From positions 137,516,001 through 137,580,000 of the forward strand of contig NW_024704742.1 of the NCBI RefSeq assembly GCF_018977255.1: a stretch of 64,000 bases of DNA, in the 5' to 3' direction. Below the pieces are notes generated by a model that saw only the letters and a program-made list of their open reading frames with translations, was not told the origin of the DNA and ran no database searches. A program made the translations under genes and the position numbers. The first letter of the stretch is position 1; each line of letters opens with the position of its first letter. The stretch comes from Callorhinchus milii (lineage: Eukaryota). Shown here in pieces: positions 31,166 through 64,000 of this stretch.

Positions 31166-32212
31166 CTCAAATGGTTGTTGACCTGTAGGCCAAAAAGCTG
31201 AAGTTCAAAATTGTTACTTTCCAAACAAACTTCCTGTCATCAACGTACGTTGAATTTCGGTAAAATCCCCGTTCAGCGTACAGCAGTGATTTTGTTTTTA
31301 TAGTAACCTTTTCTGTTTGGTATCCGTGATCATTGGTGTTATCTAAGTGCTCTGAGATGCTGTCCGGCATGGAGGGCGCTATATAAAGCCAAGTTGTTGT
31401 TGTTATCTATCTCGTGTAGAATGCAATCAACATGATCAACAACAACTTGCACTTATATAGTGCCCTTCATGTGGGGTAACGTCCCAGAATGCTTTACATT
31501 GTCCGAGTCTGACAACGGGCTGAGGAGGGTGGGGGTGCGGGAGGGGAGGTGCAGTGACTGTAAGCACGATGAAAAAGGATGGTCTTTATATGGGATTTGA
31601 AGATGGGGAGGATGGGGTCAAGGGAGTAATTGAGGGAGAGAGCCCCAGAGTTTCAGCATAGTGGCTGAAGGCACAGCCACCGATGATGGTACGGAGGGCA
31701 CCGGGGACAAACAGAAGGCCGGAGCCAGCCGAGCGGAAGCGACGGTTAGTGGAAGTGGGAAATAAGAAGGTTGGAGAGGTAGGGAAGGCATGAAGGGGTT
31801 TGAAAATGAGTGAGAGGATCTTGAAATTGATTGGTTCGGTGATTGGGAGCCAGTGGAGCTTGGCAAGGACTGGTGTGATGGCAGCAATTGGACTGATTTG
31901 ATGATCATCTGTCGAGTTTACCAATCTTCTTTGGTAGCAAGGTAGCAGTTTGATTTGAATGGATTGGATTGATTTGAATAGCTCTTCTAAAAGACCTGGT
32001 ATAGACATGATGGCCTGAATGACCTCCTTCTGTGCTGTATAATTCTATGAGTTTTTGGGGGTTAGCCCGGTGTCTGAGGGTTACCCATTACCATGCTTAA
32101 GAATTCTCCAACCAAACTGAGAAATTCACGCATCCCACCTACACATGGAAATCCCAGAGATGGATTGTTGGAATGGAATGCGCTCTCTCTCTAATTTAGG
32201 TGCAGTTTGGCA

Positions 32213-35200: not shown

Positions 35201-35400
35201 TCCACCTGAGACTCCAGCTCAGCTACTCTAAGCTGGAGCTTCCTCAGTTGCAGACATTTGCTGCAGATGAAGTGACCTGTGCTCAGGGCACCCTCCATCA
35301 ACTCCCACATACCACATTCCTCACACTTCACCTGCCAGGTCATTCTCTCCTCTCACTTTATTTATCCCTGTATTATTGTTGTTTAGAAGATATACTTCCC
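32213..35400 (-). mobile_element. CR1 LINE with ORF1 (Cys zinc finger, leucine zipper, SGNH-esterase-like) and decayed ORF2 (APE + RT); 3' end missing
   Basis: ORF1 starts ATG at 35343 (CEECGMW..CSKCLQLRKLQLRVAELE, VVIGDE, HIGIND). APE motifs LYLNARS, ITETW, VYRPP, GDFN. RT motifs YRPVSLTSVVGK, LDFKKAFDKVPH, KFADDTKL. Confidence 0.93.
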
Positions 35401-38100: not shown

Positions 38101-38668
38101 AGCTCATGCTGCGATCTAAATGTAAATGATATTGACATATTGATATATACCACCATATTGGCGTGGTATATTGGTAGGCGAGCCTTCAGCTCCTCTGCCC
38201 CCCCCCCCCACCCCCTTTGGAACTCCATCCCATCGCGCCTTGGTTTTGCTCTTTCCCTTGCCTTCTTCGAAGCTTGTGTCAAGACCCTCCTTTCCATCCA
38301 TGCTTTCGGTTATCATCCTACCCCTACCCTCCCCTTTATCCACCCCTCCTGATCCCAACATCCTCAGGTCTAAATCCTTAACTATCCAGCGACTTGGGAA
38401 GACCACCCGACGTGAAAGGCGACCAACAAATTTAATTTGTTGTTGATATAAAAGTGTGAAATGTAAAAGAGGATTAAAAGTCACTGAGTCACTGAAACAT
38501 GAGGTGGGGCAGGACTATTGCTGGGGAGAAACATTGCAGAGCATCAAAATAAAGCGGACGGAGCTCGTTGACCACAGAACGAGAGGAGGAAGGAAAGAGA
38601 AGGGTGACCAGCTGTGCCAGTGCGAGGCAGACGTCTGCGGGGAAGGAGTGTGTCCTGAGTGAGGGACG

Positions 38669-39890
38669 ATGATGCTGGGAGCTGTGCTCTGTACCCTGGT
38701 CCTGTCAGCCTCTGCCTTCCGTACGTACTTTCCAATCAGAAACCTGACTGGCTTTAATTACTGCTTTACCTTTTACTGCAATAATTACAGTCATGTGACA
38801 TTTCGCAGAAATAAGATAATCTACTTGGGAATGTGTTGGATGGAGACACTTTCCTGAGGATCAGGGACCTGGAGGTAAATGACATTGGCCAGTATTTCTG
38901 TTATGTACACCTCACGTTTCTAAATGAAAAATACCAAAAGGTGATACAGGACATGTCATGGCTGCAGGTTATTGGTAAGAAATCTCTTGTCTCTGTGGGA
39001 CACGGAAAGGGGTAAATGAACAGGTCAATCTTCACCGATGCAATGTTAAGGACAATGTTTGTTTCATTCCATATCCCACTCCTCATGTGTCAATTAGCAC
39101 AAGAAACGTATTAGGAATTAGCAGAAAATCCAGAAGCATGGGCACATGGATTCTTCCCACTTGTCTCATGTTAGCCGTGCTACTCAAAGCCTTAACATAG
39201 CCTCACCTTCACCCCCACACTCCCTTCCTGATCCCAACATCCAGCTTTGGTGGAAATCCTGACTGTCCAGCATCTCAGGACGTCTGCCCCATGTGCAAGG
39301 CGCTATCCAAATGTAATTTGTTGTTGCTGCAATCTGACAAAGTAGCAGGAAGCTAACGATTCGGTGTTTACAAAATGACAAGATTGGTTTGGATGGAGAA
39401 GGCCCATCTGATCTCATCCTTCCAGGACACTCACCTACCATCCCCTCATCACAGCAGCAAGTTGCATTGTAAATGAGTCCCAGTGTTCTGGCCTCTACTA
39501 ACCTTCTTGACAATCTGATCCAGTTCGGGGAGTGTGCAACAACACAGAAATGATGGGGAGGGAGCGAATGGGATTAGAGTAGAGAGTTTCAGTGGGGTAG
39601 CGAGCACCAGTACACACATGATGAGGAAAAACTCTTGTGTTTCTTTATACCTAAAGCTCCGGCTGTCATCCTGACCATGTCCCTTGTGGCTGGTGATGGA
39701 GCCAGAGACGACATTGTGTGCAAGGCTGAGGGGAAAACTGCCGGCCAACATCAAATTCATCGACCCCGAGAATAACACACTGCTCATTAACACCAGCCAC
39801 ACGCCAGTCACACACGTACCGGACAAGCATCAAACCGTGGGGGAGATCCGGGGCCCGAGGCTGAGGGGAACTTACTGAGTAGCTGAGAAC
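38669..39890 (+). pseudogene. Deleted and frameshifted paralog of the Siglec-15-like gene: leader 38669-38720, 3' part of V2 about 38827-38974, C2 remnant 39657-39890
   Basis: The leader is identical to 48721-48772. Intron 1 jumps directly into mid-V2, so V1 is lost. C2 has a +1 A at 39734-39737 and TGA in place of the F-strand Cys at 39876-39878, and is then cut off by an L2 fragment before the TM. Confidence 0.88.
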
Positions 39891-41706
39891 GCTGAGATGC
39901 TGGTCCTCACCTTCAAAGCCTTTCACAAATCTTGCTCTTCCCTACCTCTGGGACCTCCTAACGCCCTACCATTCTGCTTGCTTCCTCCTCAGCCTGCTTT
40001 GGTTCACATACCCCACCTCGCTCACCCTACTATTGGTGGTCGGTCCTTCTGCCACGCTGCCCCACCTCTGGAACTCCATTCCCGAGTCTCACCACCTTGC
40101 CACCTTCAAGCCCCACCTCAAGATCCTCCTCTTCGACTGTGCTTTTGATCTCCCTGCTACTCCCTGTATTTGAGACGTCTAAAGATGTGAAAAGTGCTAT
40201 ATCAAATGCAAGGATTATTATATTATTATTTTATTATTATGAAGCGCTACGACAGGGCAGTATACCTTCCACCGAGTACTTGGCCTCAATCTTGATTGTG
40301 AAAGAACATGTTCTGGGATAGGCAGAGCATCAATGTTGGTGTTCTCTGAAGATCCGGCCAGATCATATTGATTAATAAACAAAATATTTGCCACATTCTG
40401 AACGGCATTTTTAGGCCTGAGCTGGATCCAAAGGGACTCAACTGACAGCGGAATATCCGATAAAATTCACTGCGACCGCCTTGGTAGCCTGATTCCTCAG
40501 CCAGGCATGTTCGCAGTCCTCCAGATGATGATCGAGCTGGTCTGGCTCACTGGCAGGACTTGGAGGAACAGACCAATCACATGGATGGAGATCCAACTGT
40601 ATATGCCGAAGGTCTAATGGGTTGGGTGAACCTAGTCGGACAAGCAGCGAGAAGTTTGAGACAGTGTTGGCAATGGGCAACTGTTGTAGCTGGTTATAAT
40701 GTAGTTATAATCCGATGGACCCTCTGGAATCCCTGAACCTTGCCAATCAGCACTGTTGTCTCTGAAACAGAAGATACATGGGCTCCATGACCCGATATGG
40801 AGGGTTGAAGCCCCACGTTGGGACGTGGAGCCCATATAATCTATAATGACACTCCAGTGCAGTGGTGGAGCAGAATCCTGCATTGTTGGGGTTGCCGAGG
40901 TTCTGTCTGCCTGACCAGGTGGACGTTAAAGATTCCATTATATCAGAAAACAATTAGGAAGTTTCTCTCTACCAGTGTCCTGGCCAACAATCCCCCAAAT
41001 AAAATTAGTCACTCACTCCACGGCTGTTTGTGGAATATTGTTGTGCACAAGTTATTACGGTTATAAACTCTCTAGGCTTGGGTGAACAGGGTGTCTCTCT
41101 CTCGAGGGAGAAAATGCACGCTCCATTGCTGACAAGCAGAAAGCAGATATAGATGGAATTTTGCTCAGTAATTTGGTTTAGAAAGTACATCCAAGAGAGT
41201 CTATCAGATCCTCACTGAGCAATATATGAAAGTGGTGGCAGTGCTGGTAGTGGGAAAATAATGCACCCAGTGGCATTATTACACCAGGTTCATTGTGAAG
41301 CTCGTAATCTTAGTTCACAGTTACTGCTAATTGTGATGCTATTAACGAGTATAAAATTATCAACATTGGAAATATTTCCTGAACTAGTCTCAGGATTGTT
41401 AACAGAAGCCAGTTCTCCTCCTGATTCAGTTGGTAACATACATACCAAAAGACTGTAGGTATCTGCTAACCCCATATCACCCTGTCCTCGCTCCCTCACC
41501 TCCTTCAAGTCTCTAGACCCTCTTCGACCATGCCTTCGGTCACTCTCCTACCCTTCCTGCCCTCCACCCTCCCTGATCCCTAGCCTCTCCTGCTCGGGTC
41601 CAAAACCCTGACTGTCCAGCGCATTGGGATGTCCTCCCAACATGAAAAGCACTTTACAACTGTAATTTTGGATTGTACTGTTGAAAGTTGGGACTTTGAG
41701 CTCATA

Positions 41707-46860: not shown

Positions 46861-47971
46861 CAGCCTTGTTAGTCGCTTGGTGGATAGCTTTTCCGGGGAT
46901 GATAATACCTTGAAGAAAATATTTGGACACTCAATCCATGACTGTTGGTGGGACACTGCTGTGCGCTTATTGGCTCCGCGTTTCACCCACAAACTATGCA
47001 GTCAAACCACTTTATAGTATTGTGAAGCGCTTTGAGATGTCTCGAGGATGTGATAAGGCGCTATATGAAATGCAAGGATTATTTTAGTTGCCTTGCACAA
47101 ATTGGCTGCCGATAAGATGGTTATGTATACAGCTCAGTCAGAGATCTCAAAGAAAGTAAAGAACAAAGAAAACAGGGAGGGGAAGGAGTTCTCAAGAAAG
47201 GTGACAGAAATAAACTTGGGAACTATCGACCCATTAGCCTGACCTCAATAATTACCTTCTTTTTTCCATTAGAAAGGAAGTGGACGTTTACCACTTCCTT
47301 TCTTTAGATATGAAAATAATCTAATTGACATCCAATTTCATTATTTTGAATCTTAAAATAATCAGAACAGGTTCAGAAAACGTACGTCTTGTCTGACCAA
47401 ACTCATACAGTTTGTTTGATGAGGTGACAGCTCAAATTAGTTGTCGGAAGCTATATGTTGTGGTGCAGCTAAACTTCCAAAAGACTTTCAGCAAAGTGCC
47501 ACATGAAAGACAACTTCACAAACTGTTATCCCTGGGTATCATGGGCAAGACATGGACCAGCGACTTCTGTTTTTGTCTCAGATTCGCAGCAACTGCAGTA
47601 TTTTGGGTTTTGCAAGACATGGACCTGGATTCAGAATTGGCTGAAGGGAAGGAAGCAGAGGACCTTAGTCAATTTGCAAATCCCTTTTCGGGGGTAATAA
47701 TTCCTTTAAAAAATAAATTGGTCACTTCAATCCACGACTGTTTGTGGTACACATTGCTGTGCTCAATTAGCGGATGGTTTCGCCCACAAAATAGACTGTT
47801 AATTCACTTTACAGTTAATTCTGTGAAGATCTTTGAGGACGAAAACGTGACAAATGCAAGGATTATTGTTAGTGTTGACCTGGATTTGCAGACCCAGGGT
47901 AAGAGAATGGATGAGGGCATGGTTAGTGCTGGGGAGAAGCAGGTGTGCGAGGGAAAAGCGTGAGCGTATGT

Positions 47972-48016
47972 ATGCTGGGAGCTGTGCTCTGTACCCTGGT
48001 CCTGTTAGCCTCTGCC
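47972..48016 (+). pseudogene. Orphan third copy of the Siglec-15-like leader exon, without splice donor
   Basis: atgctgggagctgtgctctgtaccctggtcctgttagcctctgcc, one mismatch to the leader over 45 nt, then runs into a CR1 fragment. Confidence 0.8.
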
Positions 48017-48720
48017 ACATGTTAGGGGTGACCTGATAGAGGTCACAATAGGGGAAATACCAATAGATTTATTTCCATTTATCAGTTAGTTGCAAGAGGA
48101 ACAAATATAAAAGGATCACAAAAAAGGAACTAAGAGGCGTTAGAAGCCCTGTCTTCACACAGAGGGGGTGGGTTTGTGGAATTCTCTGCCACAAATCACA
48201 TCTAAGGCAAAAATCCGTCAAGTTTATAAAAGGGATTTGGATAGATGTTTGAAAAGGTGGTATATTAAACGATATGGGGGGGGTGAGGGAGTGATCCTAA
48301 CTCCCAGATCGGGTCCAAATCCCTAAATGTCCACCGCCTTTGGACATCCTCCCGACATCCTCCCAACATGAAAGCGCTATACAAAGGTGATTTGTTGGTG
48401 TTGGAATAAAGGTGTGTAAAATGCAAAAGAGGATTAAAAGTCACCCAGTTACTGTAACATAGCACCCAACAGCAACAACAAAATTACATTGATAGAGCGC
48501 CTTTCACGTTGGGAGAATGTCTTAAAGCGCTTAACGCAGTTACAGGCGCAGGGTTGGTATTGGGAAGAAATATTATAGAGCATCAGAACAAAGCGGATGT
48601 GGGGGTTGGAGCTCTGGTGGTGACTGCAGAACGAGAGGAGGAAGGAAAGAGAAGGGTGACCAGCTGTGTCAGTGCGAGGCAGACGTGTGAGGGGAAGGAG
48701 TGTGTCCTGAGTGAGGGACG

Positions 48721-48772
48721 ATGATGCTGGGAGCTGTGCTCTGTACCCTGGTCCTGTCAGCCTCTGCCTTCC
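48721..48772 (+). CDS. SIGLEC15-like: Siglec-15-like leader exon [17 protein letters not shown]
   Basis: ATG, hydrophobic signal peptide, phase-1 donor gtacgt; 52 nt. Confidence 0.85.
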
Positions 48773-51700
48773 GTACGTACTTTCCAATCAGAAACCTGAC
48801 TGGCTTTAATTACTGCTTTACCTTTTACTGGAATAATTACAGAGTCATGTGACATCTGGAAATAAGATTCCTATCTTTAAACTGGACAGACCTGCCGCTG
48901 AGTGTCACTCACTGAGCCTCACAGTGCAAGCGTTTACTTGTTAACTCTGCCTCTGTTTCATTTCCCCAATTGCTCCCTGCTGCTTTTCAATCCCCATTGG
49001 AGCTCTCTACTCTAATCTCTTTCCTTACACTCTCCCCATCTTGTCTGTACAGTCGTTGACAGCTGGATCTCGTTCCACTTGGCTACTGTAATCCTGCAAT
49101 CCAAAGCCCCCGCGGGTAGAGTGGTCATAGCTCGACAAGCAGTGGGAAAGTTTGCCTGACCGTATTCTCAGTGGTTAGCATGAGTTAAACTCTATCAGTT
49201 ACCCAAATGCAGACTCTGGGGTCCCCAATACTTGGAGTTTGTCAACATAAGCATGATACATCCCTCTGGGGAGTGAGTATATGTTCCATTCCAGGCAAAC
49301 ATAAGTTTCTATGTACAGATGGAAACCTGAGTAGTTTGATTTGAAGCACAGTGATGGGTTTCCACTTGCTTCAGACACCTGGCTGACGACAAACGATGTA
49401 TTTTTATTGTACAGAAACAGCCCATCCAGTCCATCTGTTTTTCTCCACACAAGCCATGTAGTCTAATCCCTCTGTCCCGTCATTCCCCTCTTCCACACCC
49501 TTTAATATTCATCCTCTTAAATATCTATTAAAAAATGGCTCGGTGATGAGTTATCAGGAGACCCGAGTTTCCTTCTCTGTCCGGTCGCTCCTAATCTTTT
49601 CAGCTCTTGTGAAAAAGCCACTAATCTCTCAAATTTATCTTTGTAGCTGAAATCCTTGGTCTCCAGGGACATCCCAGTGAATCTAAGCTGCACTTTTCCC
49701 ATTGCTTTTATATTGCTTTTCTCACAGGAAAGCAAAGCTGTGATCTTTTTTATTGTCTTCTGATTCACATTACACCATGTGTGTCTTCACAGGGCTCAGT
49801 GAGAATAACTGGACGATGGAGACCCCCAATACAGTGACCGGCAGGTTAGGGTCACCGGTCACCGTGTACTGCAAGTTCACTCCCCCTCACCCCAGATACA
49901 CAGGGAACATCACCATCATGTGGAAGGCAGGAAGGAATGGTACTGTGTATATTAAATATACAAATTATGGGCCGGATTCACAGGGAAAGTACCAAAATGT
50001 CATTGATGTAAACGAGGGAGAGCGACACCGAGTGATTGGGAACACGAGGAAGAACGACGCCACAATAAAGATAAACCAACTGAGGGGAAAGGACAATAAT
50101 AAGCTGTTGTCCTGTTGTGTGGAGCTCCAGGGTGAGGACGGAAAGTATGAAATTGGCCCCAAAACACGTCTGATTGTTACAGGTGAGGAACGATGGGAAG
50201 TGGGAATGAGACGTGACATTCCTCACTGGGGCCGGAGTCAGTGGAGAGTGTCCCGTCCCAGGACGGGCAATAGAGAGCCAGTGTTGGACAGTGTGTAGCA
50301 GGGAGCTGACAGGTGACAGTGAGTGAGCAGCTGCAGGGAGGGAGGGCTGTGCTGTCACTGAGCACCTGGAGGCTGAGGTGGCCTCACTGTGGGGTTGTCT
50401 ATTTGCCAAGGCCCTTCACATGAGGACCTGTATTCAGCAGTGGGGGTGGGGTTGGGGGGACTGGTGTTAATGCAGGGACTGGTTCCAAAATGGCAGCCTT
50501 AGCACATTAGTATGCATTCAGTCTTCTGTGGTGGTCGCTGGTCTGGTTCCTCAGCCAGGCGGGTCGCAGTAATCCAGGCCACTGATGATTTGGCATCAGC
50601 CTAATTGGCAGGACTTGGAAGTGCAGACCAGTCACTGGGGGCAGGGAATCCTCCCATTCAGCTCATTATCTGCACTGGCCTCTCTGGACAAACTACAACT
50701 TGCTTTGATATAGCGTCCTTCACGCAGGGTAGCGTCCCAGAGCGCTTTGGGTTGCTACCTCCAGTTAAGGGCGCTATATAGGAAGCATAAACAGCAGGAA
50801 CCTTGCCAAACTGTACTGTCAAGGACAAACTATGCTGTGGAGTCCAGTAGCGTAGGGTTTAGAGCACTTGCCTCGCAAGCGAGAGGACCTGGGTTTGATT
50901 CCCACGTGGGATCAAATCATAGGCAACTTTCCTTCATCCACACGCCTCTGTTTACACAGCAGTAAGTAGGAACCTGGTTGTTATTTCATAACCATTGGGG
51001 CCTTAGAGTAAACTGACAGCAATACAATCACTGCACTTACAGTAATAAATATTAATAATCCTTGCATTTGATATAACACCTTATCACATCTTCTAGACAT
51101 CTCAAAGCGCTTTACAGAATACACTGTAAAGTGAATTGACTGTATATTTTGTGGGCGGAACATGACTGCCAATTTCTCACAGCAGTGTCCCACAACAGTC
51201 ATGGATTGAGTGACCAGTTTTTTTTAAAGGGATTAATACCAAGCAAATCAATCTGCCAATCGAAGAAAATATGGCTTCCTACTTACTGCTAGGTAAACAG
51301 AGGGGTGTGGAGTAAGAAAACTTGCCCAAGGTTTTCACCTATCCAGGAATCAAGCCCAGATCCTCCAGCTTGCGAGGCGAGTGCTCTTATCACTAAGGTG
51401 CAGGACTTACCAGTAAGAATATTATTGATGCTATAAAAATACCATGTTTTGTGTGTGAGACATTGTGCTGCCCACAGGCTCACACAGGGTGAGTGAGGAG
51501 CACAGGCCTGAGGGAGATGGTGCCATGAAGAGCAGGTAACATATCCAGGATTTCACAGTGTGTAACATTCTCTTTGACCGTGCCTTCAGCTCCCCTCTCG
51601 ACTCTCTTCCCCCTCCTCGCTCCCTCCCTTCCCTCCCCTCACCCTGACCATTTCCCCCCTCCTCGCTCCCTCCCTTCCCTCCCCTCACCCTGACCATTTC

Positions 51701-54700
51701 CCCCCTGCTCGGGTCATGACCCAACTGTGCAGCGCCTTGGGACGTCCTCCTGACGTGAAAGGCGTTTTATAAATGGAATCTTGTTGTTGTTGTTGTACTC
51801 TGTCACATTGACTGCTCTGCACTATTCCAATCCTGTTCCTGTCTCAGGTCATGAAGAGAAGCTCCGGTCAGTGACTGATACCAAGGGAGGTGATGCCACA
51901 CTGCCCTGCTCCTTCACCATCCCCAACAGATACCAGATTCGTGCCACAGTCACAGTGCTTTGGAGGAGAGGGAGGCCACATGGGCAGCTGGTGTTTAATT
52001 ACACTCTTGGCCTCACCGCCCGCACCAACTCCAGGGAGTCAGAGACAGTGAATGAAGGAAATCGCTACAAGCTGGTCAGGAATGTGGGAGATGGAGACGC
52101 TTCCCTGAAGATCAGGGGCCTGGAGTTAAACGACACCGGACGGTATTTCTGTCACGTACACGTCATGTTTATAAGTAAAGGATCCCAACTGGACCAGGTG
52201 ACACAGGACATGTCAGAGCTGCAGGTTGTTGGTAAGAAATCTCTTGTCTCTGTGGGATGAGGCTCGTCTCATTCCTTATCCCATTCCTCATGTGCTCCAC
52301 CCCCCCCCACCCGCACTCCACCACCATCTCAATATCAGGCTGCTTTTTTAATGTGTCCAGTATCCTGGCCTGTACCACCCTTCCTGGCGACCTTGTTCCA
52401 ATCATTGATTACCCTCTGAGTGAAGAAAAACTTGGCATTTGCGACTCCAAACCTGTGTCCTCTTCTATGCTATTGTTGTATTCTAAATTATTGATTTAAA
52501 TTTACTGTTTTCAATCCCTTTAAACCTGGTAAAACTCCAGCAGTTTTCCCAATGCACACTCTGGGCTCCCCAAACACTGACCTTTGCGTGTGGCCCTCCT
52601 GGGAGAGAGTGCACATCCCATACTGTTCAAACAGAACTGTAACGTGAATGCAACTCTCAGCCATTTGGTTTGGAGACTCCCAAGTATCACAATATCAGAT
52701 GTTCTGCTCATCATAAACCCTCCTTCAATCACAGGCCATGTCCTCTGATTTTACTAATAAGAATTAATAAGAGAACATTAGGTAGTTAATCGTTTGGTGG
52801 ATCATTTTCTGGGGGTGATAATCCCTCCAAATAATAAATAAAATAAAAATAATTTGGTTACTCAATCCATGACTCTTTGTGGGACACTTGTGTGCCCAAT
52901 TGGCTGCCACATTTCACCCACAAAATACAGTCAATTCACTTAACAGTGCATTCTGTGACAAAAACAGAGAGAGGAAAGTGAGTCAACGACCCTTTGTCAG
53001 AACTGGGAGGAAAGAGATGTGGATGTGGAAAATGGGTTTCAGTGAACGCATAATCAAACACAAAAGGGAAACCGATAGTAAGGAGGGGGAGCAGGGTAAA
53101 AGGGAGGAACAAAAGTCATGTCGAAGAGAAGCTTGAGAACAAATGGGCTGAAGGGTTTTCTTCACATGAACCTTGTGAATCCTGTGATTATTATCTAATA
53201 CATCAAAAACGGATGATTTGCATATTTGATATGTACATATTTCTTATTGACCGCTATCTAAAGAAACTCTACAAAATAGATCTGAATATTTATGGCTCAC
53301 AGGAACATAGGAACAGGAGGAGGCCATTCAGCCGATTCGAGTCTGTTGTGCCATTTAAACCTTATCAAATGTCTCCTGAAAGTCCATATAAATGACACCC
53401 AATAGACACTCTCTTATCCACCATTTTAGTGACCTCCTCAAAAAATTCAACTCAATTAGTCAGACGCGACCTACCCTTCACAAACCCACGCTGACTCTCT
53501 TTGACGAGCTCATACCTGTCCAAATGTTCAGTCACTCTGTCCCTGGTAATGGATTCCAGTACTTTCCCTACAACTGGCATTATACTGACAGGTCTGTAAT
53601 TTGCTGGTTTTTCCCTCCCCCCCTTCTTAAATAAAGGGGTGCCATTGCAATTTTCCAAATTAACAGTACAATTCCCGAATCTAGTGAGATTTGGAAAATT
53701 ATGATGAATGTATCTTCAATTTCCTCTCCTATTACGGGAACTCCCTCCTCGTCGGCCTTCGCAACTCTTCCCTTCACAATCTGCAGATCATCCAAAACTC
53801 TGCAGTTCATGTATTCTCACGCACCAGTCTCCGTGACCCCATCACTCCCACCCTCGCCCGACTCCACTGGCTCCTCATCCCCCAGTTCAAGATCCTTATC
53901 CTCACCTTTAAGGCCATCCATGGCCTTGCCCCCTCCTACCTCTCTGACCTGCTGACTCCCTACCAACCTGCCCACTCCCTCCGCTCATCAGGCTCCGGCT
54001 GCTCCATGTCTCCAGCCCGACCCGCTCTACCATGGCCGGACTTTCAGCCTCTCTGCCCCCACACTCTGGAACACCATCCCACGGTCCCTTGGCCTCACTT
54101 CCTCCATTGCCTCCTTCAAGGCCGGTCTCTTCGACCATGTCTTTGGTCTCCCCCCCACCTCTCTGCCTTCCCTCACCCCTACACCACCATTCCCCTGACA
54201 CCTGACCTATCAGAGGTGCCCTAACACCTGACCTATCAGAGCTTTGGGACGTCCTCCTGACATGAAAGGCTCTCTATAAATGTAATTTTGCTGTTGTTAT
54301 TGCTGTGTTACCATTATCCCTTTCTAGTTTCTTATCCACTTACTTTTTAGGATTATTTAGATATATATTTTTTAAATTTACGAGGCTTTACCTTTGGCAT
54401 TGATTTATTTTTAGTTATTTTCCCTTAATCTATTTTACCATTAGCAATTTCAGGATAAATAGCAAACAAGTAATTTCACACCTTTTGTCCCTTCCTCGCA
54501 CTCCTCAATACTTAACAGCTACTTCCTCAGGAGTATTACCATTGGTCTGGGTGATCCTGTGTCTAGACCAACTGAAACTTCCTTCTTTTACACTTGACTT
54601 CACTCTGCGATCTCCTGCAGGCCCCGAAGAGGATCCCCCACTGAGCTCTCTTGCTGGTTCTGCTTCTCCTTTACAAGGAGATCAAAACAAGTTCTCACCT

Positions 54701-57700
54701 GCATCTCTTTCCTTATCTGCACTGAATTCCCACTCTCACCAAATTCCTTAACAGAATTCTTACTATGTTCCAACTCACTCAGTTCTCTCCTCACACTGCT
54801 GGGCTCTCTGCTCAAGTTATGTTAGCAAAATTACAGGCTATGGGGATTAAGGGAACAGTGGCAGCCTAGATCCGAAAATTGGTTGAGAGACAGAAAGCAG
54901 AGGTTAGTGGTGAATGGTTGTTTTTTAGACTGGAGAGAGGTATACAGTGGTATCCCCCAGTTGTCGTTATTAGGACTATTGCTCTTGTTAATATGTTAAT
55001 ATATAATAAGGAGAAACTGTTTCACTCGGCAGGTGGGTCAGTAACCAGAGAACACAGATTTAAGGTAATTGGGAAAAGAACCAGAGTGGAGACGATGAGT
55101 ACATTTTTTTACCCAGAGAGTTCTTTACAGTCTGCAATGCACTGCCTGAAAGGGTAGTAGAAGCAGATTCGATAATAGCTTTCAAAAGTAAATTGGATAG
55201 GTCTTCAAAACGGAAAAAAATTGCAGCTCTATGGGATAAGAGTGCGGAAGTGGGACTAGTTGATTGCTCAGTGGAATCCTGTGCGTTAGAGTATTTGTCT
55301 TGCAAGCAAGAGGACCTGGGTTCGATTCCTGGGCAGGGCGAAACATGATGCACGGACACGATGGGCTGAATGGCCTTCTTCTGTGCTGTAAGATTCTATG
55401 ATATTAAAAAGGAATTTCAATAAGCAGGGAAAGGGATTAGAGGAGAGAGCTCCAGCAGATACCATGGGGAGAGAGCAGGGAATGGGGTTAGAGTAGAGAG
55501 CTACAGTGAGGAGTGAGCACCAGCACAAACACGATGGGGAAAGTTGTTTGGTTAGAATAACTCTGTGTTTCTTTATACTTGAAGCTCCGGCTGTCATCCT
55601 GAGTCTGTCCCTCGTGGCCGGTGTTGAAGTCGGAGTTGACATCGTGTGCACGGCTGAGGGGGAACCACCGGCCAACATCACATGGATCGACCCCAAGAAT
55701 AACACGCTGCCCATTAACACCAGCCACACGCCAGTCACACACGTACCGGACAAGCATCTAACCGTGGGGGAGATCCGGGGCCCGAGGCTGAGGGGAACTT
55801 ATCGCTGTATAGCTGAGAACACACAGGGCAGAGACGCCAGAGACATCCTCGCACCTGGATCACAGTGTGATGGGAACAGACAGAGTGATGGCGACGGACA
55901 CAGTGACGGAGGCAGACACAGTGACGGGGGCATACTGCATGGTGTAGACAGTATGTTGTATGTCGGCATCTCCATTGTGGTGCTCCTCATTCTGGTGACT
56001 GCCATTATCTGGGGGGTAAAGAGAGGTAGGTGTTTACACACAAAGGTGGTGATTATTCCGAGTGAGTCTGGCTCAGCCGCTCGCACTTCTCTACTCCGGA
56101 CTCGGCAAATAATCTGCTGCTGTTACTTACTACCATAACAACATTTACTTTTAATTATTACGCAACGCTGTGTATCTGCACACCGGATAACCGCATGGCC
56201 ACAAGACCTGATAACCAGATTCTCAGGTCCGGATAACCACATGCTAAATATTCCCTGTGACATTATCTACACGCCAGATATCCTACTATTACCTTATTCA
56301 CAGCACAGTCCGATTACATATTGATTGTTAGAGAGAGATGAGCCCCTACAACAACAACAACTTGGATTTATATAGAGCCCTCCACGCTGGACGGAGTCTC
56401 AGAGCTTCATAGTAACGGATCCCGGGGCCGAGTCAGAGGGAGGGGGGGGGGGGGGGGGGAGGTGATCAATGGCGCGGTCGAAAAGAAAGGTCTTCAGCCG
56501 AGACCTGAAAATAAGAAGAGAGGGAGCGAGAGACACCCGCACAGACACAGTGGGAGAGAGCAGGGACTGGGATTAGAGTAGAGTAGAGAGCTCCAGTGGG
56601 GGAGCGAGCACCAGCACAGACACAGTGGGAGAGAGCAGGGACTGGGATTAGAGTAGAGAGCTCCAGTGGGGGAGCGAGCACCAGCACAGACACAGTGGGA
56701 GAGAGCAGGGATGGGATTAGGGTAGAGAGCTCCAGTGGGGGAGCGAACACCAGCACAGACACAGTGGAGTAAATGGATTCTTTTGATGGTGATATGAGCC
56801 TGGCTTCCTACTTCAGTAATCATGGTTACACCACACAACAGGAAGAGGAGATTCCCACATGTCTTTCCCTCTGCGGGTCTAGCCTTGAGCTAGGATTATT
56901 CTCCTTGGAGAAGAGAAGTTAAGGGGAGACTTAATAGAAGTTTTCAAAATTATGAGGAGAAGTAAAATAGTTATTAAAAGAAACAGAGGGGAGGTGAGGA
57001 GAAATGTTTTCACACAGCGAGCTGTTGGAATCTGGAATCCATTGACTGAAAGGGTGGTGGAAGCCGATTTGCTAACAAGTTTTAAGAGAGATGTAGATAA
57101 TTATTTGGGGAGAAGTTTGCAGGGTTATAGGGAGAGAGCAGGGGAGTGGGATTGAATTTGATAGCTCTTTTCAAAGAGGTGGTATGGACACAATGGGATG
57201 AATGGCCTTCTTCTGTGCTGTATAATTCTATGATTCTATGATTTCACTGGAATAACGTGTGCACTAACCAACGTCATCAGCAAATCATCTAAAGCAATCT
57301 CTCACCTTTCTTTGGTCTCTTCAGATTGCGGTACCAGACATTCCCTTCAGCTTTCAGAGAGGTGAGAGTGCCTTTCTAATCTCTTTATTTTTACATCCAC
57401 TTTCAAGTTCCTAATTGCTGTTGAACACCATGATTGGCAAGCTTCCTGCTGCTTGTCCAGCTAGGACCATTAGGGCTTTGGCTTGCAGGGTTAACAGGAG
57501 CTGAATGGGAGGATTCCCTGCCCCCAACTCTAGCCGATGAGCCAGGCTGTGCTGTCATTAGCAGTGCCCTACAATATTGTGGACTCAGCTGGCTCAGGAA
57601 CTGGATTAGAAGGTGGGCTCGAGTCCAGTATTCAGTTGCCAAGCATGTCACCTTGGAGCCAGCCAAGCCCAAGGAGACACCGTGTACCTTTGCCACCCCC

Positions 57701-60700
57701 TCACTCCCAAATGACCAACTCGTGTCTCCTCTGTGGGGGTGTTAAGTGGGTCTCCTCAGGGCTGAGCTGGCTCCAGGGCAACATTTTTGGTAACAGAATT
57801 TCATTTTATTTGTGAGGTATCACACGACACCTGGAACTCTCATATAAATCCCTCGGCCTCGCTCTTGGACTTTCAAAATCTAGGTAATGAATGCGCTTTC
57901 TCCCATTCAACTCGGACTTCTACTGCTTCTCTCTGAAGAGATGAGGGAAGATCTCTGACATGAAGGATGCTATATAAGTGCAAGCGGCTGTTCTTGATTC
58001 CCTCCTGCACCTCATCTGTTTTTATATCCTTCCTGAAACGCGCTACCCAGGACTGCACACAATGCTGTGGCCAAACTGAGGCGTGGACCCTTCAGAGAAG
58101 AGGGTTTCTCCCGGCCCCCTGGCCACCAATACCCTCACAACAACAACTTGCACTTATATAGCATTCTCCACGCTGGTTAGTATCTCAGAGCACTTATCAG
58201 TGGCCTCTATAAAATGTACAATATAAAAAGTTTTCTCTTTTTTTTAGTCATCAAGTGGATTTGAGTGTTGAAAACGACATGGTCCGACCTCAGCCGCCTG
58301 CAGGAGACGGTAACTGTCCTGTCTCGATTAGCGATGCCACAATTTTCACCCTGTGCTTTCAATATCCGGTCACTGGGTCTCAGTCGAGCTCAGTCAGTGA
58401 CCATCTCACCTCTGGCTCTGGGTGTCTTCACACAGAGAAACCCATCACTGTGCTTCAGAGCATCCAAACCAGACTGAGAATTCCACCCATGTAAGTCACC
58501 TACACGTGGAAATTTCCATATATGGAATGGCTCACTCTCTCCGTCTCCACGGAGAGACTCATCCTGCTTACCTCATTTCAGAAAATTTTCAGCGCTCAGT
58601 GGCGAGAACCAAGTCATCGAGATAACTGCTGGAGTACAACCAGCTGAAACCACATAGCTTGCCATTGAAAGCATTAGATAATAAGCTTCCTGCTGCTTGT
58701 CCAGCTGGGACCATCCTCCCAGAGAGTGCCATATATCTGTCACCCAACAGGAGCTGAGTGGAAAGAATCCCTGTGCCCATCGGGATGTTAAAGATCCTGT
58801 GACACTGTCAAAAAAAAGCAGTTCCTTCCAATGTCCTGGATGACAATTGGTCTCTCACATCACTGTGTGCAAAATACACCTGCCAAGTCACCAATAATAT
58901 TTGGAAAAGAAAAATATGAAAGTAAATGGGCAAAGGGGAGTGGGTCTAAAGGGAGAGCCTTTCAGAGCCAAATGGTCTCCAACTGGGTATAAATGTTTTG
59001 ATTGTATAAACGGGGCTGTAGTGAGAGGGGAGCCTCAGAGCTCTATCATGGGACGGCTGGGAGGGCACCTTATACACTCTGCCGCTGCTGCCCAGTGACA
59101 CGGTAGATTGCAGCAAAAGGGAAGCTGAAGAGAGCTGGAAAACTGAACTGACTGTTGTGTCTCGAACAGATGAAGCAGCTGTAATATACAGTGAGGTTAC
59201 CCCAGTATCGGCCCGGCAAAGAGATTCAGGTAAGAAACGTATCACGCGGGGACGGAGCCGACATCATCTCACCTCTCAGCCGACAGGCATCTGCCTTCCC
59301 TTTACAACAACAACAACTTGGATTTATATAGCGTCCTCCAATGCCGGACGGCATCTCAGTCTGATTGTCTTTACTGGCTCAGGTGGCAGTACTCTCACCT
59401 CTCGGTTGTGGGTCCGTCCACTTACATAATGTAAGCTTAGACTCCAGTGCAGTGCTGGTGGAGCAGTGCATTATCGGAGTCCATGAGATGAGGTCCCATC
59501 TGTGTCTGTTGAGGTGGATGTTAAAGATCCTGTTGGAAAACAAAAGGGAGCTTTCCCTGTGTCCACATAAAATTGGTTCCTCATTTAACAGTTGTCTATG
59601 GGATGCTGCTGGGTGCAAATTGTCTGTTGTGCTTACTTCACAGTGAATCCTGTGACATGTTTTGATATATTTTGCTGTGAAAAATCTGAAAGCCAATGCA
59701 AGAAGGGGAATGGGACTAAAAGGAGAGCCTTTCAGAGCCTCACAGGGCAACAGCCAAATGCGCTCAAACTGGGTATAAATGATCTAATTGGATAATTGGG
59801 GCTGCAGTGAGAAGGGAGCCTCAGGGCTCTGTCATGGGATGGCTGAGAGGAAACCTTATAGAGGCTCCGGCCCCAGTAGATAGTGGAAAAGAGGAAGCTG
59901 AAGAGAGCTGGAGAAAGAGCTGACTGTTGTGTCTCTGACAGACGAAGCTGCTGTGATCTGCAGTGTGGTTCCCCCAGCACCGGCCCGGCAAACAGATTCA
60001 GGTAAGAAACGTATCACACGGGGACGGAGCCGGCATTGTCTCGCCTCTCAGCCGACAGGATCTGCCTTCGCTGTCCTGTCCGGGGTTAACCATCGGCCTG
60101 GCTTACTTGGAAGCACTCTTACCTCTCAGTCAGAAGGTTGTGGTTTCAAGCCCCACATTGGGTCTTTTACTGACATAATCTAGGCTGCCTGGTGCAGGAG
60201 GAACACTGCATTGTCGTAGGTGTTGTCCATCAGATGAGACATTAAACTGAAGTCCCATCTGTCCCTGTTCAGGTGGATGATAAATAGCCTGTGGCTCTAT
60301 TGGAAAAGAGGAGGGAGTTTCTCTGGGTGTCCAGATTAAATTGGTTATTCACTTCATGGTTGTTTGTGGGTCCAAATTGGCAGCCGCATTGACCAACAAA
60401 TATACAGTCACCACAGAACACAGTGAATCCTGTAAAGTGCTATTAGACACGCTTTGATATGTTTTGATGACGTGATAGCACCACTCTGAAGTGTCCTCCA
60501 AATGTGAAATCAATTCAAATTGTTGTTGCTGTTGTTGTTACATTAAGTGACACGATTAATATCCAGTTCAGCACTGACCTCACAGACCCCTACCCCGGGG
60601 GCCTTCGAGCTCACACAGTCCAGGCTGGCAGTCCGGTGCGGTACTGGGAGGAGCGCTGCATTGTGAGAAGTGCTGTTCTTTGATTGCAATATTAAACCAA

Positions 60701-61466
60701 AGTCCTGTTTGTCTATTGAGGTTTTTTTGGCTCAGCCAAGTGTAGAAACCCATCACCGTTCTCAAGAGTATCCAAACCAGATTGAGAGTTATATAATCTT
60801 TGCTTTTGATGTAGCGCTTTTCCCGTCTTCTAGACTTTGCAAAGCCTTCACAGAATATACTGTAAATTGAATTGACTATATTTGTGGGCAAAACGCGGTA
60901 GCGAATTGCATATAGCAGCGCTCCACAAACAGTCGTGGATTGAAGCGACCAATTTATTTTCTTTCTTTCTTGAGTAAGGAAACTTGCCCAAGGTTTCGCC
61001 CTTCTGGGAATCAATCCCAGGTCTCTTGCTTGCAAGGCTAGTGTTCTAACCACTGAGCTACATTATATATGTCCCCTCACATGGAAGTTTGCCGGCATCT
61101 GGAATGCAATGTGCTGCTGGAAAAGAGAATGAAATTTCTCTGTCCTGGTGTCTTGGCCATCATTGCTACAAAAATAATTGGTCTCTCGTTTCATGGCTGT
61201 TTGTGGGACATTTCGAAAGCAAATTCGCTGCCAAGTTTGCTGATCAAGAACACAGTCACTACACTTGACAGCGATTCTCTTTGAGACATTTGGATCTTAG
61301 AGTCGTGAAAGTAAATGTGAGAGTTTTTATAAACTTTAACGTGGGTCACACGTTATATCAGAGCTCTCAGCAAGTGGTGGGACATGTCCTGACTCCATTT
61401 GTTTCTCTTCCAGATGTGATTTATGCTGTTGTCACCAAATCGAAGGGGAGATCAGCTGAGCAGTGA
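48721..61466 (+). CDS. SIGLEC15-like: Siglec-15-like type I membrane receptor, leader-V-V-C2-stalk-TM-cytoplasmic tail with two ITIMs; 9 exons, 1539 nt, 512 aa
   Basis: Exons 48721-48772, 49793-50182, 51848-52231, 55585-56025, 57325-57361, 58248-58309, 59170-59229, 59942-60001, 61414-61466, all AG/GT and in phase. V1 (WTMETP...[12 protein letters not shown]...GNTRKND...CCVELQGE...YE...RLIVT) and C2 (VCTAEGEPP...HLTVGEI...[13 protein letters not shown]) align with recalled human Siglec-15 motifs ([41 protein letters not shown]). C2 and TM share one exon. The gene neighbours PSTPIP2, as SIGLEC15 does on human 18q21. Confidence 0.85.
49793..50182 (+). CDS. SIGLEC15-like: Siglec-15-like V-set domain 1 exon
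   Basis: ttcacag| ... |gtgagg, 390 nt, phase 1-1; B-strand Cys (VYCKF), C-strand Trp (IMWKAG), F-strand SCCVE. Confidence 0.92.
51848..52231 (+). CDS. SIGLEC15-like: Siglec-15-like V-set domain 2 exon
   Basis: gtctcag| ... |gtaaga, 384 nt, phase 1-1; [23 protein letters not shown]. Confidence 0.93.
53330..55400. mobile_element. CR1 and L2 fragments in the Siglec-like V2-C2 intron
   Basis: [12 protein letters not shown] (CR1, -); L2 3' part at 53700-54300 (+); CR1 3' end at 54820-55400 (+). Confidence 0.75.
55585..56025 (+). CDS. SIGLEC15-like: Siglec-15-like C2-set + stalk + transmembrane exon
   Basis: acttgaag| ... |gtaggt, 441 nt; CTAEGEPP...W...YRC; uncharged [24 protein letters not shown] at 55953-56018, then KR. 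Confidence 0.92.
56530..56770. repeat. Minisatellite of about 65-70 bp, about 3.5 copies; single related units upstream of both C2 exons and near 4710
   Basis: cagacacagtgggagagagcagggactgggattagagtagagagctccagtgggggagcgagcaccagca. Confidence 0.88.
57325..57361 (+). CDS. SIGLEC15-like: Siglec-15-like cytoplasmic exon [12 protein letters not shown]
   Basis: ctcttcag| ... |gtgaga, 37 nt, phase 1 to 2. Confidence 0.72.
58248..58309 (+). CDS. SIGLEC15-like: Siglec-15-like cytoplasmic exon [21 protein letters not shown]
   Basis: T-rich acceptor tttttag| ... |gtaact, 62 nt, phase 2 to 1. Confidence 0.72.
59170..59229 (+). CDS. SIGLEC15-like: Siglec-15-like cytoplasmic ITIM exon [20 protein letters not shown]
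   Basis: gaacag| ... |gtaaga, 60 nt, phase 1-1; VIYSEV fits (I/V/L/S)xYxx(L/V). Confidence 0.8.
59942..60001 (+). CDS. SIGLEC15-like: Duplicated cytoplasmic exon [20 protein letters not shown] (ITIM Tyr replaced by Cys)
   Basis: ctgacag| ... |gtaaga, 60 nt, phase 1-1; paralog of 59170-59229; inclusion in mRNA not proven. Confidence 0.65.
60085..60540 (+). mobile_element. Old Deu-domain tRNA SINE (SacSINE1-like); remnants also near 6920-7030, 8810-8960 -, 12215-12430, 41670-41870, 59380-59650
   Basis: cctctcagtcagaaggttgtgg head; gatgagacattaaactg...ttcaggtggatg...aaagagga Deu-like core; (TTG)n tail. Confidence 0.75.
61414..61466 (+). CDS. SIGLEC15-like: Siglec-15-like terminal exon [17 protein letters not shown]
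   Basis: ctcttccag|, ITIM VIYAVV, TGA at 61464-61466. Confidence 0.78.
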
Positions 61467-62973
61467 ACACTGGTCCCGCCCAGAGTCTGCTGTCCGCCAT
61501 TTATACAGGTGAGACCTGTAGTGACTTATATCGAGCCCGGAACAGCAGTCAATGCATCAACATTGTACAGTCCGGTCCCCGAGAGCTCGGCTCATTATAG
61601 TCCGAGTGTGTGTATAGCGCGGCTGTGGCTTGCGGCCCTGCTATATGTGAACACGTTATTGCTGTGTATTCACGGGCGGCCCCGAGGTCTGCAATTTACA
61701 ATTGTGTTTATCTCCACTTCAGGGAAATCAAAGATGGTGGCGGTCTGGCCTGGAAGAGGAAGAGTCCATTCCCGGTCAGGAGGGACACACTGCCACTTGG
61801 TGGCCATTCCAGCATTGAATAGTTGATTGATTACTGTGTTTTTTAACAGATATTTTAGATCTGCTTTCAAATAATAATAATAATCCTTGCAGTTGATATA
61901 GCGCCTCATCACATCTTCGAAACATCTCAAAGCCCTTTTGTGGGCGAAACGTGGCAGCAATTGCGCACATCAGTGTTCCACAAACAGTCGTGGATTGAGT
62001 GATCAAATTATTACTAATGATCATTTTTTTAAGGTATTATTATCCCTGGAAAGTGATCCGCCATTCGACTAACAACTGGGTTCCTAGTTACTGCTCAGTA
62101 AACAGGGGCGGGTGGAGTTAGGAAACTTGTCCGACGTTTCGCCCTGCCCGGGAATCAAACACAAATCCTAGACCTGTGCTCTAACCACTAACATACAGGA
62201 CTACACGTGCTTAGTGATTACCAGTAAAGTGTTATACTGTAGTTTCTATAAAAAATGCAAGGTATTGTGTTTAACTCCAATTGCTGTAACTGTGTGCTGT
62301 CTTTACACACTGGGCCACTGGGGCGCACTGCAGGACAGTCATTGGTTCACAGACCAGTGGAGAATCTATCTGAATGTTTTCTAACTGAGTGGGTTCCTTG
62401 ATTATTAAACCTCTGTGTCTCACTTACCTGTGGAAACGTTGCTTATTCTGGGAGCCGACCCTGATTGTAGATTCATGGCTGGGCTTGGAATTCATTCCCA
62501 CGAGCGGCTGCGAAGGCCGGAACAAGAGAATTGCTCAAAAGGGAACTGGATAAATACCTGAAAGGATTGAGGATGTGAGGAGAGAGTGGGGAGGTTCGAA
62601 ACACAGGGAGCGGAGGGCAGACAGAAAAGGGGAAAGGGCTCCGTGGGCTGAAAATGTCTGTTTCTATATTTCCCAGAGACCAAAAAAGTGTTTGAATCCC
62701 AACTCTCAGCTTGATTGAAAACCCTCGACTGTCCAGCGCCTGGAAGGAGGTCCTCCTGGCCTGAAAATCGCTGCAATTTATTGTTGTTGTTGTACTGCAA
62801 GGACTGGAGGCGTTACCCGGAGTCCAAGTTTGTAAACACACGTTTGTACATCCAGCATCTGGAATCCACCTTGACTGACTTGTTGAGAGGCCAGCAGCAA
62901 CCGCTGTTTAAACTCTGCACGTTTAACTGGTGGAACCGTCGCTCAATGGGAAGGGACATGTGCTCAAGCTGAG

Positions 62974-63295
62974 ATAATAATAATAATCCTTGCATTTGAT
63001 ATAGCGCTTTGCACGTCTTCTCGACGTCCCAAAGCGCTTCACAGAACACACTGTAAAGTGAATTGACTGTATATTTATGGGCGAACGCGGCAGCCAATTG
63101 CGCACAGCAATGTCCCACAAACAGTCATAGAGTGAAAATGACCAATTTATTATTGTTTTTGGTTTTGGAGGGATTATTATTAGGCTCTGTGTGGAGTAAG
63201 GAAACTTGCCCAAGATTTCGCCCTCTGCCTGGAATTGAACTCAGGTCTCTCGTTTGCAAAAGCGAGTGCTCTAATCACTGAGCTACAGGACTCCA
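62974..63295 (-). mobile_element. Young SINE, full length
   Basis: Same family as 30011-30337. Confidence 0.9.
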
Positions 63296-63499
63296 CGAGA
63301 TACTTTATGCTGAGATATGTTGCCCACTGGGAAGCTTGTAGGGAGTTCCTACCATCTACCTAGTGTGGACTCAAACTCGCAATTGTCGGATGCTGTAAGA
63401 CCAACTGGTGACTATCTTCCTTGGGGTCTACTTGGAACTAAACTGCAGCAGGACTTGGAAGAGCAGACCATACAATGGGAGCAGGGAATTCTCTCACTC

Positions 63500-64000
63500 A
63501 TGTTCCAGTTCCCCTCTCGACTCTCTACCCCCTCCTCGCTCCCTCCCTTTCCTCCCCTCACCCTGACCATTTCCTCCCTGCTCGGGTCCTGACCCAACTG
63601 TCCAGCGCCTTGGGACGTCCTCCCGACGTGAAAGGCGCTCTATAAATGGAATCTTGTTGGTGTTGTCGTTGTTCACCCCATGTCTGAACCATTGGGGAGC
63701 ATATAGATATTGAAAAGGAGGGGACCAAGGACAGAGCCCTGAAGAATTCCGCATGAGTGGGGTGGAGGCTAAAGGAGAAACCGTTTGTGGAGATGAAGTG
63801 GAGGCGGTGTGAGAGGTATGATCTGAACCAGGTCAAGGACAGAGCCACAAAGGTTGAGGTGAGGAGAGGTGGTGAATGAGGATAGAGTGATCGACGGTGT
63901 CGAAGGCAGCAGAGAGGTCAAGGAGGATGAGGAGGCAGAGGGAGCCCTGGTTGCAGATGGACAGAATATCATTTGTCACTTAGACAAGGGCGGCTTCTCT
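63500..64000. mobile_element. L2 3' tail (+, 63500-63672) joined to an L2 RT fragment (-)
   Basis: Hairpin tail and (TTG)n; the antisense part matches the L2 RT at 600-760 and 1060-1200. Confidence 0.85.

Follow-up and report, generated by a model that had tools for sequence, protein, structure and literature searches.

How does a gene that resembles Siglec-15 come to encode two V-set domains, an uncharged transmembrane helix (TM) and a tail with inhibitory motifs of the immunoreceptor tyrosine-based kind (ITIMs), when mammalian Siglec-15 has one V-set domain, one C2 domain and a lysine in its TM? The question is raised by a stretch of 64,000 nucleotides from the elephant shark Callorhinchus milii (RefSeq assembly GCF_018977255.1, contig NW_024704742.1, positions 137,516,001 to 137,580,000), here called the window, which contains such a gene at positions 48721-61466. 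The original prediction, which was made from the letters of the window alone, took the gene for a lineage-specific Siglec-15 paralogue rewired from activating to inhibitory signalling, and proposed that it might be the inhibitory partner in a paired-receptor system. The evidence presented below indicates that the gene probably encodes a type I inhibitory receptor of the Siglec-15 family and that it is one unit of an array in which activating and inhibitory receptors alternate.

Window positions 48000-64000 were read, and the nine proposed exons, all on the + strand, were joined and translated. AG acceptors and GT donors border every exon, and with their compatible phases the exons form a single reading frame from ATG to TGA of 1539 nt (512 amino acids). 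The translation is residue for residue that of RefSeq entry XP_007907103.2 ("uncharacterized protein LOC103188801", Callorhinchus milii), and a chance reading is excluded because of this identity. The older version of the entry (XP_007907103.1, UniProt A0A4W3HWP9) differs from it in three amino acids that leave the frame intact. In MU249832.1 (GCA_018977255.1), to which the window is identical over the stretch compared, the gene is located at 137,564,721-137,577,466. The gene is real and intact, and public annotation already includes it, although neither a name nor a function is given there.

Pfam finds in the 512-residue protein two V-set stretches (V1 and V2) and one Ig_3/I-set/C2 domain, and in the model from an AlphaFold2 run on an eight-sequence alignment three beta-sandwich domains are predicted with confidence, residues 396-424 form a helix, and the stalk before it and the tail behind it are disordered. 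When the AlphaFold2 model was compared with the PDB, generic multi-Ig proteins (IgLON5, NEGR1, titin) were found with TM-scores of 0.2-0.3, the fold being unable to separate Ig families. The number of charged residues in the TM is zero; without a TM lysine, coupling to DAP12 or DAP10 is therefore not expected. The 92-residue tail contains just two tyrosines, Y462 in VIYSEV and Y499 in VIYAVV, which both conform to the ITIM consensus and are 37 residues apart. Exon 8 has been copied from exon 7 together with a flanking intron, and its tyrosine codon is now TGC, so that its motif, VICSVV, is dead; in other units both copies of the ITIM exon retain the tyrosine (protein P0027). Thus, the gene model, the two V-sets followed by a C2 domain with the motif CTAEGEPP, the uncharged TM and the two ITIMs all stand as originally predicted, and by its motifs (a type I protein with signal peptide, uncharged TM and two consensus ITIMs) the product belongs to the ITIM receptors.

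The proposed derivation from Siglec-15 is supported from several sides. In the PDB the best match of the whole protein is human Siglec-15 (7zoz) with 5e-18, the second best match being at 1e-6. V1 alone also finds Siglec-15 first (1e-10; next CD33 with 2e-3), and so does V2 alone (1e-9; next TIM-3 with 3e-7; PILR weakly with 1e-5). The C2 domain alone is not diagnostic, contactin, LAR and generic I-set proteins ranking before Siglec-15 (3.7e-4). The nearest named database proteins are the Siglec-15 proteins of sawfish, skates, manta and elephant shark, and neither the PDB matches nor the nearest relatives revealed a grouping of the domains outside Siglec-15. The canonical SIGLEC15 gene of C. 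milii (approximately 137,786,392-137,808,124) shares both scaffold and array with the gene, at a distance of about 210 kb. Membership in the Siglec-15 family by descent is supported by these sequence comparisons. Human and mouse Siglec-15 were reportedly described by Angata et al. in 2007. The two mammalian proteins have V-set and C2 signatures in common with the C. milii gene product (WxM..P, FTxPHxxYxGxxTxxW, GNxRx…), but they have one V-set, a TM lysine, a short tail and the arginine essential in Siglecs, whereas the C. milii protein has two V-sets, the ITIM tail and Cys or His at the positions of the arginine. In reviews, Siglec-15 is treated as an activating receptor that is ancient, conserved and coupled to DAP12 (PMC7226832), a definition by TM lysine under which the gene, its TM being uncharged, does not fall.

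For a map of the array the loci of three neighbouring RefSeq genes were fetched and all family exons in them located; approximately 62 kb outside these loci separate the pair of units on the + strand (locus L002) from the window. Two kinds of unit were found. An activating unit consists of exon 1, V1, V2, a C2 exon ending in a TM with lysine (…SFITVMLWLMPAAKCLFLLVIGIVLLCK) and one short last exon. An inhibitory unit consists of exon 1, V1, V2, a C2 exon ending in an uncharged TM and five small tail exons. On the − strand the order is SIGLEC15 (Lys), inhibitory, activating, inhibitory, activating, inhibitory, and on the + strand an activating unit is followed by an inhibitory unit (LOC103188797). 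The repeated module is "activating then inhibitory". The array comprises approximately 250 kb and is anchored on the canonical SIGLEC15, the gene in the window being its outermost inhibitory unit. A Siglec-15 with TM lysine in the neighbourhood, which the original prediction had proposed to look for, is thus present in several units in addition to the canonical gene. The idea of a paired receptor holds at the level of sequence: counterparts with TM lysine, whose ectodomain exons are 85-92% identical, reside in the same cluster, and the gene therefore has linked siblings carrying the opposite signalling module. The architecture of the gene is not the sole chondrichthyan form of Siglec-15, forms with TM lysine and forms with ITIMs coexisting.

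The 64-kb window itself contains no exon for a TM with lysine. It holds a single collinear set of intact family exons, with none further in its final 2.5 kb. Upstream of this set is a decayed paralogue at 38522-39896 that has kept its promoter and exon 1; its V1 exon is deleted, and its place is that of the activating unit in the other modules. The features are listed below.

Table: Positions, in the window, of the exons of the Siglec-15-family gene and of family relics upstream of it
Feature	Position	Strand	Remarks
Exon 1	48721-48772	+	start codon and signal peptide, 17 aa; phase 1 at end
Exon 2	49793-50182	+	V-set domain 1 (V1), aa 18-147; Cys126 codon TGT at 50116-50118
Exon 3	51848-52231	+	V-set domain 2 (V2), aa 148-275; His250
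Exon 4, whole	55585-56025	+	C2, stalk and TM; splice donor 56025/56026
Exon 4, first part	55585-55874	+	C2/I-set domain, aa 276-372; CTAEGEPP at aa 297-304
Exon 4, stalk	55867-55929	+	18-nt tandem repeat, 3.5 copies (…SDG…)
Exon 4, TM	55953-56018	+	uncharged transmembrane helix, aa 399-420, then KR
Exon 5	57325-57361	+	membrane-proximal tail
Exon 6	58248-58309	+	tail; conserved among other inhibitory units
Exon 7	59170-59229	+	ITIM 1, VIYSEV at 59181-59198, Tyr462
Exon 8	59942-60001	+	tandem duplicate of exon 7; VICSVV, TGC at 59959-59961
Exon 9	61414-61466	+	C-terminal ITIM 2, VIYAVV at 61416-61433, Tyr499; stop TGA 61464-61466
Decayed paralogue	38522-39896	+	promoter and exon 1 kept (89-100% like those of the gene)
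Decayed paralogue, exon 1	38669-38720	+	100% aa identity
Decayed paralogue, V2 exon	38821-38975	+	3' half only
Decayed paralogue, C2 exon	39656-39896	+	one frameshift, one stop
Exon-1 relic	47969-48022	+	about 750 bp 5' of the real exon 1; meets a stop, no in-register donor

Several peculiarities of the units may be mentioned here. Two copies of exon 1 are also found in other units (locus L003, 28219 and 31405). One activating unit contains three tandem intact V1 exons (L002, 11222-14589), two of them with identical amino acid sequence and near-identical DNA. In the inhibitory unit u5 the 18-nt repeat of the stalk is present in more than 20 copies (L003, 68044-68433 and past the end of the locus), and the length of the stalk varies strongly among the units. 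A 70-bp tandem repeat in intron 4 of the gene (56534-56767; 3.3 copies, 94% matches) has relatives in other units, where they lie upstream of the C2 exons.

How close the two kinds of unit are is seen from their exons. The 17-residue peptide from exon 1 of the gene is 100% identical to that from first exons of other units of the cluster, and the ectodomain exons are open in all units. The amino acid identities to the gene are 83-88% for V1, 90-93% for V2 and 86-91% for C2 when all units are considered, and 84-88%, approximately 90-91% and 86-90%, respectively, for the intact units with TM lysine (e.g., L003 51816-58461). The likeness in DNA between the gene and the activating units ends at 55874-55892, the end of C2, and beyond this point only inhibitory units match, the activating and the inhibitory TM/tail modules having no sequence in common. 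Trees of the exons with their flanking introns are star-like, with activating and inhibitory units mixed; in the V2 tree one activating and one inhibitory unit are even paired with a support of 97/92. That activating and inhibitory units are old, separate clades within C. milii was rejected on the basis of these trees. The ectodomain exons may either have been duplicated recently or have been kept alike by exchange.

Rates of substitution were estimated by pairwise counts, and the exons counted are short and may have been subject to sequence exchange. The mean dS among the units is 0.08 for V1 and C2 and 0.017 for V2; between inhibitory and activating units of C. milii it ranges from 0.01 to 0.14. 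The dN/dS of V1 versus its paralogues is around 1 (0.8-1.2; 3.1 versus one paralogue), that of V2 is 1.5-4.6, based on few synonymous changes and pairwise not significant, and that of C2 is 0.3-0.7. As judged from these sequences, the pattern is that of paired immune receptors, in which shared, fast-changing binding domains are mounted on two old and distinct signalling modules.

The lectin part of the name Siglec is doubtful for this gene. The arginine needed for sialic-acid binding is R143 in the sequence FCRVEF of the human protein (PMC7226832). In the column of this F-strand residue the C. milii protein has Cys126 in V1 (SCCVEL) and His250 in V2 (FCHVHV), and, the arginine being absent from both V domains, lectin activity is therefore doubtful. 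The V1 codon is TGT in the gene and in two otherwise intact activating units, whereas six further V1 exons, belonging to both signalling types, have CGT; Cys126 is one CGT-to-TGT transition that toggles within the array. At the V2 position His is found in nearly all chondrichthyan copies. At the V1 position the canonical forms with TM lysine have Leu or Trp, and the inhibitory proteins of Heptranchias and Narcine have retained the arginine. The gene product probably does not have sialic acid as a ligand in the canonical mode of binding, and the loss of the arginine may reflect a different ligand instead of decay.

We propose that the receptor would operate as follows. Upon engagement of the ligand, Src-family kinases would phosphorylate Y462 and Y499. 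The phosphorylated ITIMs would, by motif and spacing, be expected to recruit the tandem SH2 domains of SHP-1 or SHP-2, and these phosphatases would damp signals in the same cell, including those of the siblings with TM lysine, which presumably pair with an adaptor of the DAP12 type.

This interpretation as a working inhibitory unit has to be weighed against a number of points. The lost arginine, the death of one of three ITIM exons and the V1 dN/dS near 1 are all signs compatible with relaxed constraint. Among the units the gene has the longest terminal branches, and it is positioned at the edge of the array beside a pseudogene. The RefSeq model XP_007907103.2 is itself a prediction, and two RefSeq models in the neighbourhood are composites (see below); annotation in this region is therefore not reliable evidence of transcript structure. 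Finally, the 2.5 kb past the stop codon (61467-64000) lack a canonical AATAAA on the + strand, and the polyadenylation signal must therefore be a variant form or be located past the end of the window.

The first group of these points, together with the decayed paralogue that adjoins, is also what makes up the case for a copy with an intact frame that is nevertheless decaying: a non-lectin, weakly signalling or unexpressed protein on the way to a pseudogene, whose sister units keep two ITIM exons of the exon 7/8 type. We consider this unlikely. The nine exons and all their splice sites are intact, without a frameshift or a stop, and the differences from the older protein version do not disturb the frame. 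The dN/dS of C2 is below 1, and both of the ITIMs that are invariant in Chondrichthyes have been retained. Even the loss of the arginine need not be a sign of decay: the Cys is also present in two intact activating units and the His in V2 is the chondrichthyan norm.

More far-reaching, and still less probable in our view, is the explanation from which we started, namely that in the Callorhinchus lineage the TM lysine of a Siglec-15 paralogue was lost while a further V-set and an ITIM tail were added to it as new parts. The domain plan of mammalian Siglec-15 is in its favour, and so are the low dS values between the unit types of C. milii, which are so close that the array must have expanded recently. 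However, a gain of the second V-set by this paralogue does not agree with the distribution of the V1-V2-C2 architecture, which is found also in the Siglec-15 proteins with TM lysine of the rays Pristis, Leucoraja, Amblyraja and Mobula hypostoma and of C. milii. Those of Pristis, Leucoraja (XP_055488168.1), Amblyraja (XP_032874347.1) and C. milii (XP_007907096.2) agree with the gene in the ectodomain and, as far as C2, in the exon plan, and differ from it in that the C2 exon ends with the Lys-TM and is followed by a very short tail. In a tree of 74 V domains, with few alignment columns, a backbone that is not resolved and no CD33-related, CD22 or MAG sequences, V1 (SH-aLRT 91) and V2 (SH-aLRT 96) form separate chondrichthyan-wide clades, and therefore the layout with two V-sets is older than the split between chimaeras and sharks/rays. 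The tree backs the V1/V2 split; it is not a formal placement among all Siglecs. It should be mentioned that Siglec-15 of lungfish has two V-sets, too, which are closely alike in sequence and whose position the tree leaves unresolved; their duplication may have been a separate event.

There is, furthermore, a second chondrichthyan family with V1-like and V2-like domains and no C2 (P0098, P0100, P0103 and P0131, from Mustelus, Rhinoraja, Leucoraja and one unnamed source). It likewise occurs in versions with TM lysine and with ITIMs, and its V2 domains are sister to the Siglec-15 V2 clade (SH-aLRT 83).

Nor is the inhibitory module specific to the lineage, as had been assumed. A HMMER search of 1.84 billion representatives, supplemented by cluster look-ups, yielded V1-V2-C2 proteins with uncharged TM and tyrosine-rich tails from Mobula birostris (XP_072113536.1), Narcine bancroftii (XP_069798446.1), Heptranchias perlo (XP_067838218.1, "Siglec-12 X3") and Heterodontus francisci (XP_067884866.1, "CXADR-like"), that is, from both rays and sharks. 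They share the ectodomain plan with the gene (the Heterodontus and Narcine models being partial), and the TM, where it is in the model (not in that of Narcine), is uncharged and ends W-x-L-K-K/R as in the C. milii type. Their tails are encoded by several exons and have, like that of the gene, a proximal xIYSxV and a C-terminal IYAxV; they differ from it in having more tyrosine motifs, up to about six. In an alignment of six chondrichthyan tails the proximal x-I-Y-S-x-V and the C-terminal I-Y-A-x-V are invariant, and the inhibitory gene of the manta (Mobula) has the same exon plan as that of C. milii. The part of the Mobula locus that was examined showed no activating units in tandem array with the inhibitory gene, and at the SIGLEC15 locus of Pristis no exon of the inhibitory type was present within 10 kb downstream.

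A census of the TM and tail among the fetched family members distinguished two forms: one with TM lysine and a short tail that contains at most one stray match to the ITIM consensus, and one with an uncharged TM that mostly has ITIMs and in which the TM of the V1-V2-C2 group ends W-x-(L/V)-K-(K/R)-(G/D/N). Proteins with uncharged TM and ITIMs that are named Siglec-15 or Siglec-15-like by NCBI are predicted also in conger eel, paddlefish, gar, sturgeon and a caecilian, and a similar juxtamembrane F-W-L-K/R is present in eel, paddlefish and one unnamed relative. Judging by these motifs, the tails of the bony vertebrates may be orthologous to those of the Chondrichthyes. Stalk, TM and tail alone (residues 372-512) found only the protein itself in a collection of 5.8 billion proteins, since so short a tail does not pass so strict an E-value limit; the homologous tails were recognized, by eye and by alignment, among the HMMER matches of the whole protein. 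Of the postulated rewiring from activating to inhibitory, the TM without lysine and the ITIM tail are thus confirmed, but the direction is not established since relatives with ITIMs exist elsewhere.

The annotation of the neighbouring units raises a different problem. XP_042192088.1 combines exon 1, three V1 exons and V2 of an activating unit with the tail and exon 4 from the inhibitory unit that follows, and in XP_042192165.1 V1 and V2 of an inhibitory unit are combined with the C2-Lys-TM exon from the activating unit that comes next, the two models spanning L002 10001-40022 and L003 10001-58461. XP_042192165.1 was, as a composite, rejected as a clean single-unit activating partner, and the exons of the units were used instead. 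The composites are either a prediction artefact in a near-identical array or the result of real trans-unit splicing; if the latter is true, both receptor types would be made from one promoter. It is very improbable, however, that in the same way the nine exons do not stand as a gene of their own but belong to a complex locus with cross-unit splicing, or are an artefact of exon chaining: intact exons are present in the window in just one collinear set, the unit upstream is wrecked and has no V1, and single-unit V1-V2-C2-TM-ITIM proteins are independently predicted in Heptranchias and Mobula.

As to the rest of the window, no other cellular gene was seen in its first 38 kb. The open reading frames at 415-2112 (+) and 32126-35343 (-) resemble by eye those of LINE-type elements (reverse transcriptase, endonuclease and an ORF1-like frame). 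ARAGORN reports 11 matches resembling tRNA-Ala, tRNA-Val or tRNA-Asp between 2930 and 50914 (e.g., 50840-50914 in intron 2), all within a repeated element; they look like the heads of tRNA-derived SINEs and not like tRNA genes. The N runs at 15962-16093 and 22728-23075, which are outside all fetched loci, lie inside microsatellite-like tracts (15684-16500 and 22468-23211, whose frames read SLS and THS repeats) and look like assembly gaps in simple sequence.

Paired activating and inhibitory receptors as a kind are well known. Siglec-11 and Siglec-16 follow the same paired logic as Siglec-5 and Siglec-14, and human Siglec-XII (SIGLEC12), which is CD33-related and encoded at an unrelated locus, is an ITIM Siglec that has lost the essential arginine via Arg-to-Cys. 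The primate pair Siglec-5/Siglec-14 is linked and has near-identical binding domains that are kept alike by exchange, with an ITIM on one side and a charged TM plus DAP12 on the other (PMC4042635). It differs from the C. milii system in being CD33-related and in having a functional arginine, whereas in C. milii the scaffold is that of Siglec-15 and the pair has been amplified to an alternating array of many units. Activating and inhibitory siblings with fast-evolving V domains, as found here, are also characteristic of PILRalpha/beta, KIR, LILR, CEACAM and the teleost NITR (PMC3533184, PMC2442602), which belong, however, to other Ig families. The form built on the Siglec-15 scaffold is predicted in databases yet, as far as we found, apparently undescribed: the open full-text literature, outside of which most subscription journals fall, gave no account of Siglec-15 paralogues with ITIMs in sharks, rays or chimaeras, nor of LOC103188801. 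The names "Siglec-12", "CXADR-like" and "uncharacterized" under which members of the family are deposited would need correction if an inhibitory lineage based on Siglec-15 exists.

Tentatively, the findings can be placed in a wider frame. Siglec-15, commonly taken for the single conserved Siglec that is activating only, may have been accompanied from the early jawed vertebrates onwards by an inhibitory twin, which would have been lost in amniotes; in C. milii the two forms would have become an exon-exchanging tandem array. The twin might be recognized by its uncharged TM, with W-x-L-K-K/R-G at the end, and by an ITIM of the form (I/T)YA(x)V at the C terminus, and its survivors might be found in cartilaginous fishes, non-teleost ray-finned fishes, eels and caecilians. 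If this is true, the paired-receptor logic of Siglecs, which is known from the young pairs Siglec-5/14 and 11/16, would go back to the base of the jawed vertebrates, and the exchange of exons and the toggling between CGT and TGT in both receptor types would fit a pathogen or a variable self ligand as the driving force. Siglec-15 serves as a drug target both in bone disease and in cancer. The array of C. milii would also be a compact natural experiment, with the arginine present and absent in both signalling types, and it could show how the members of receptor pairs stay alike and why sialic-acid binding is lost.

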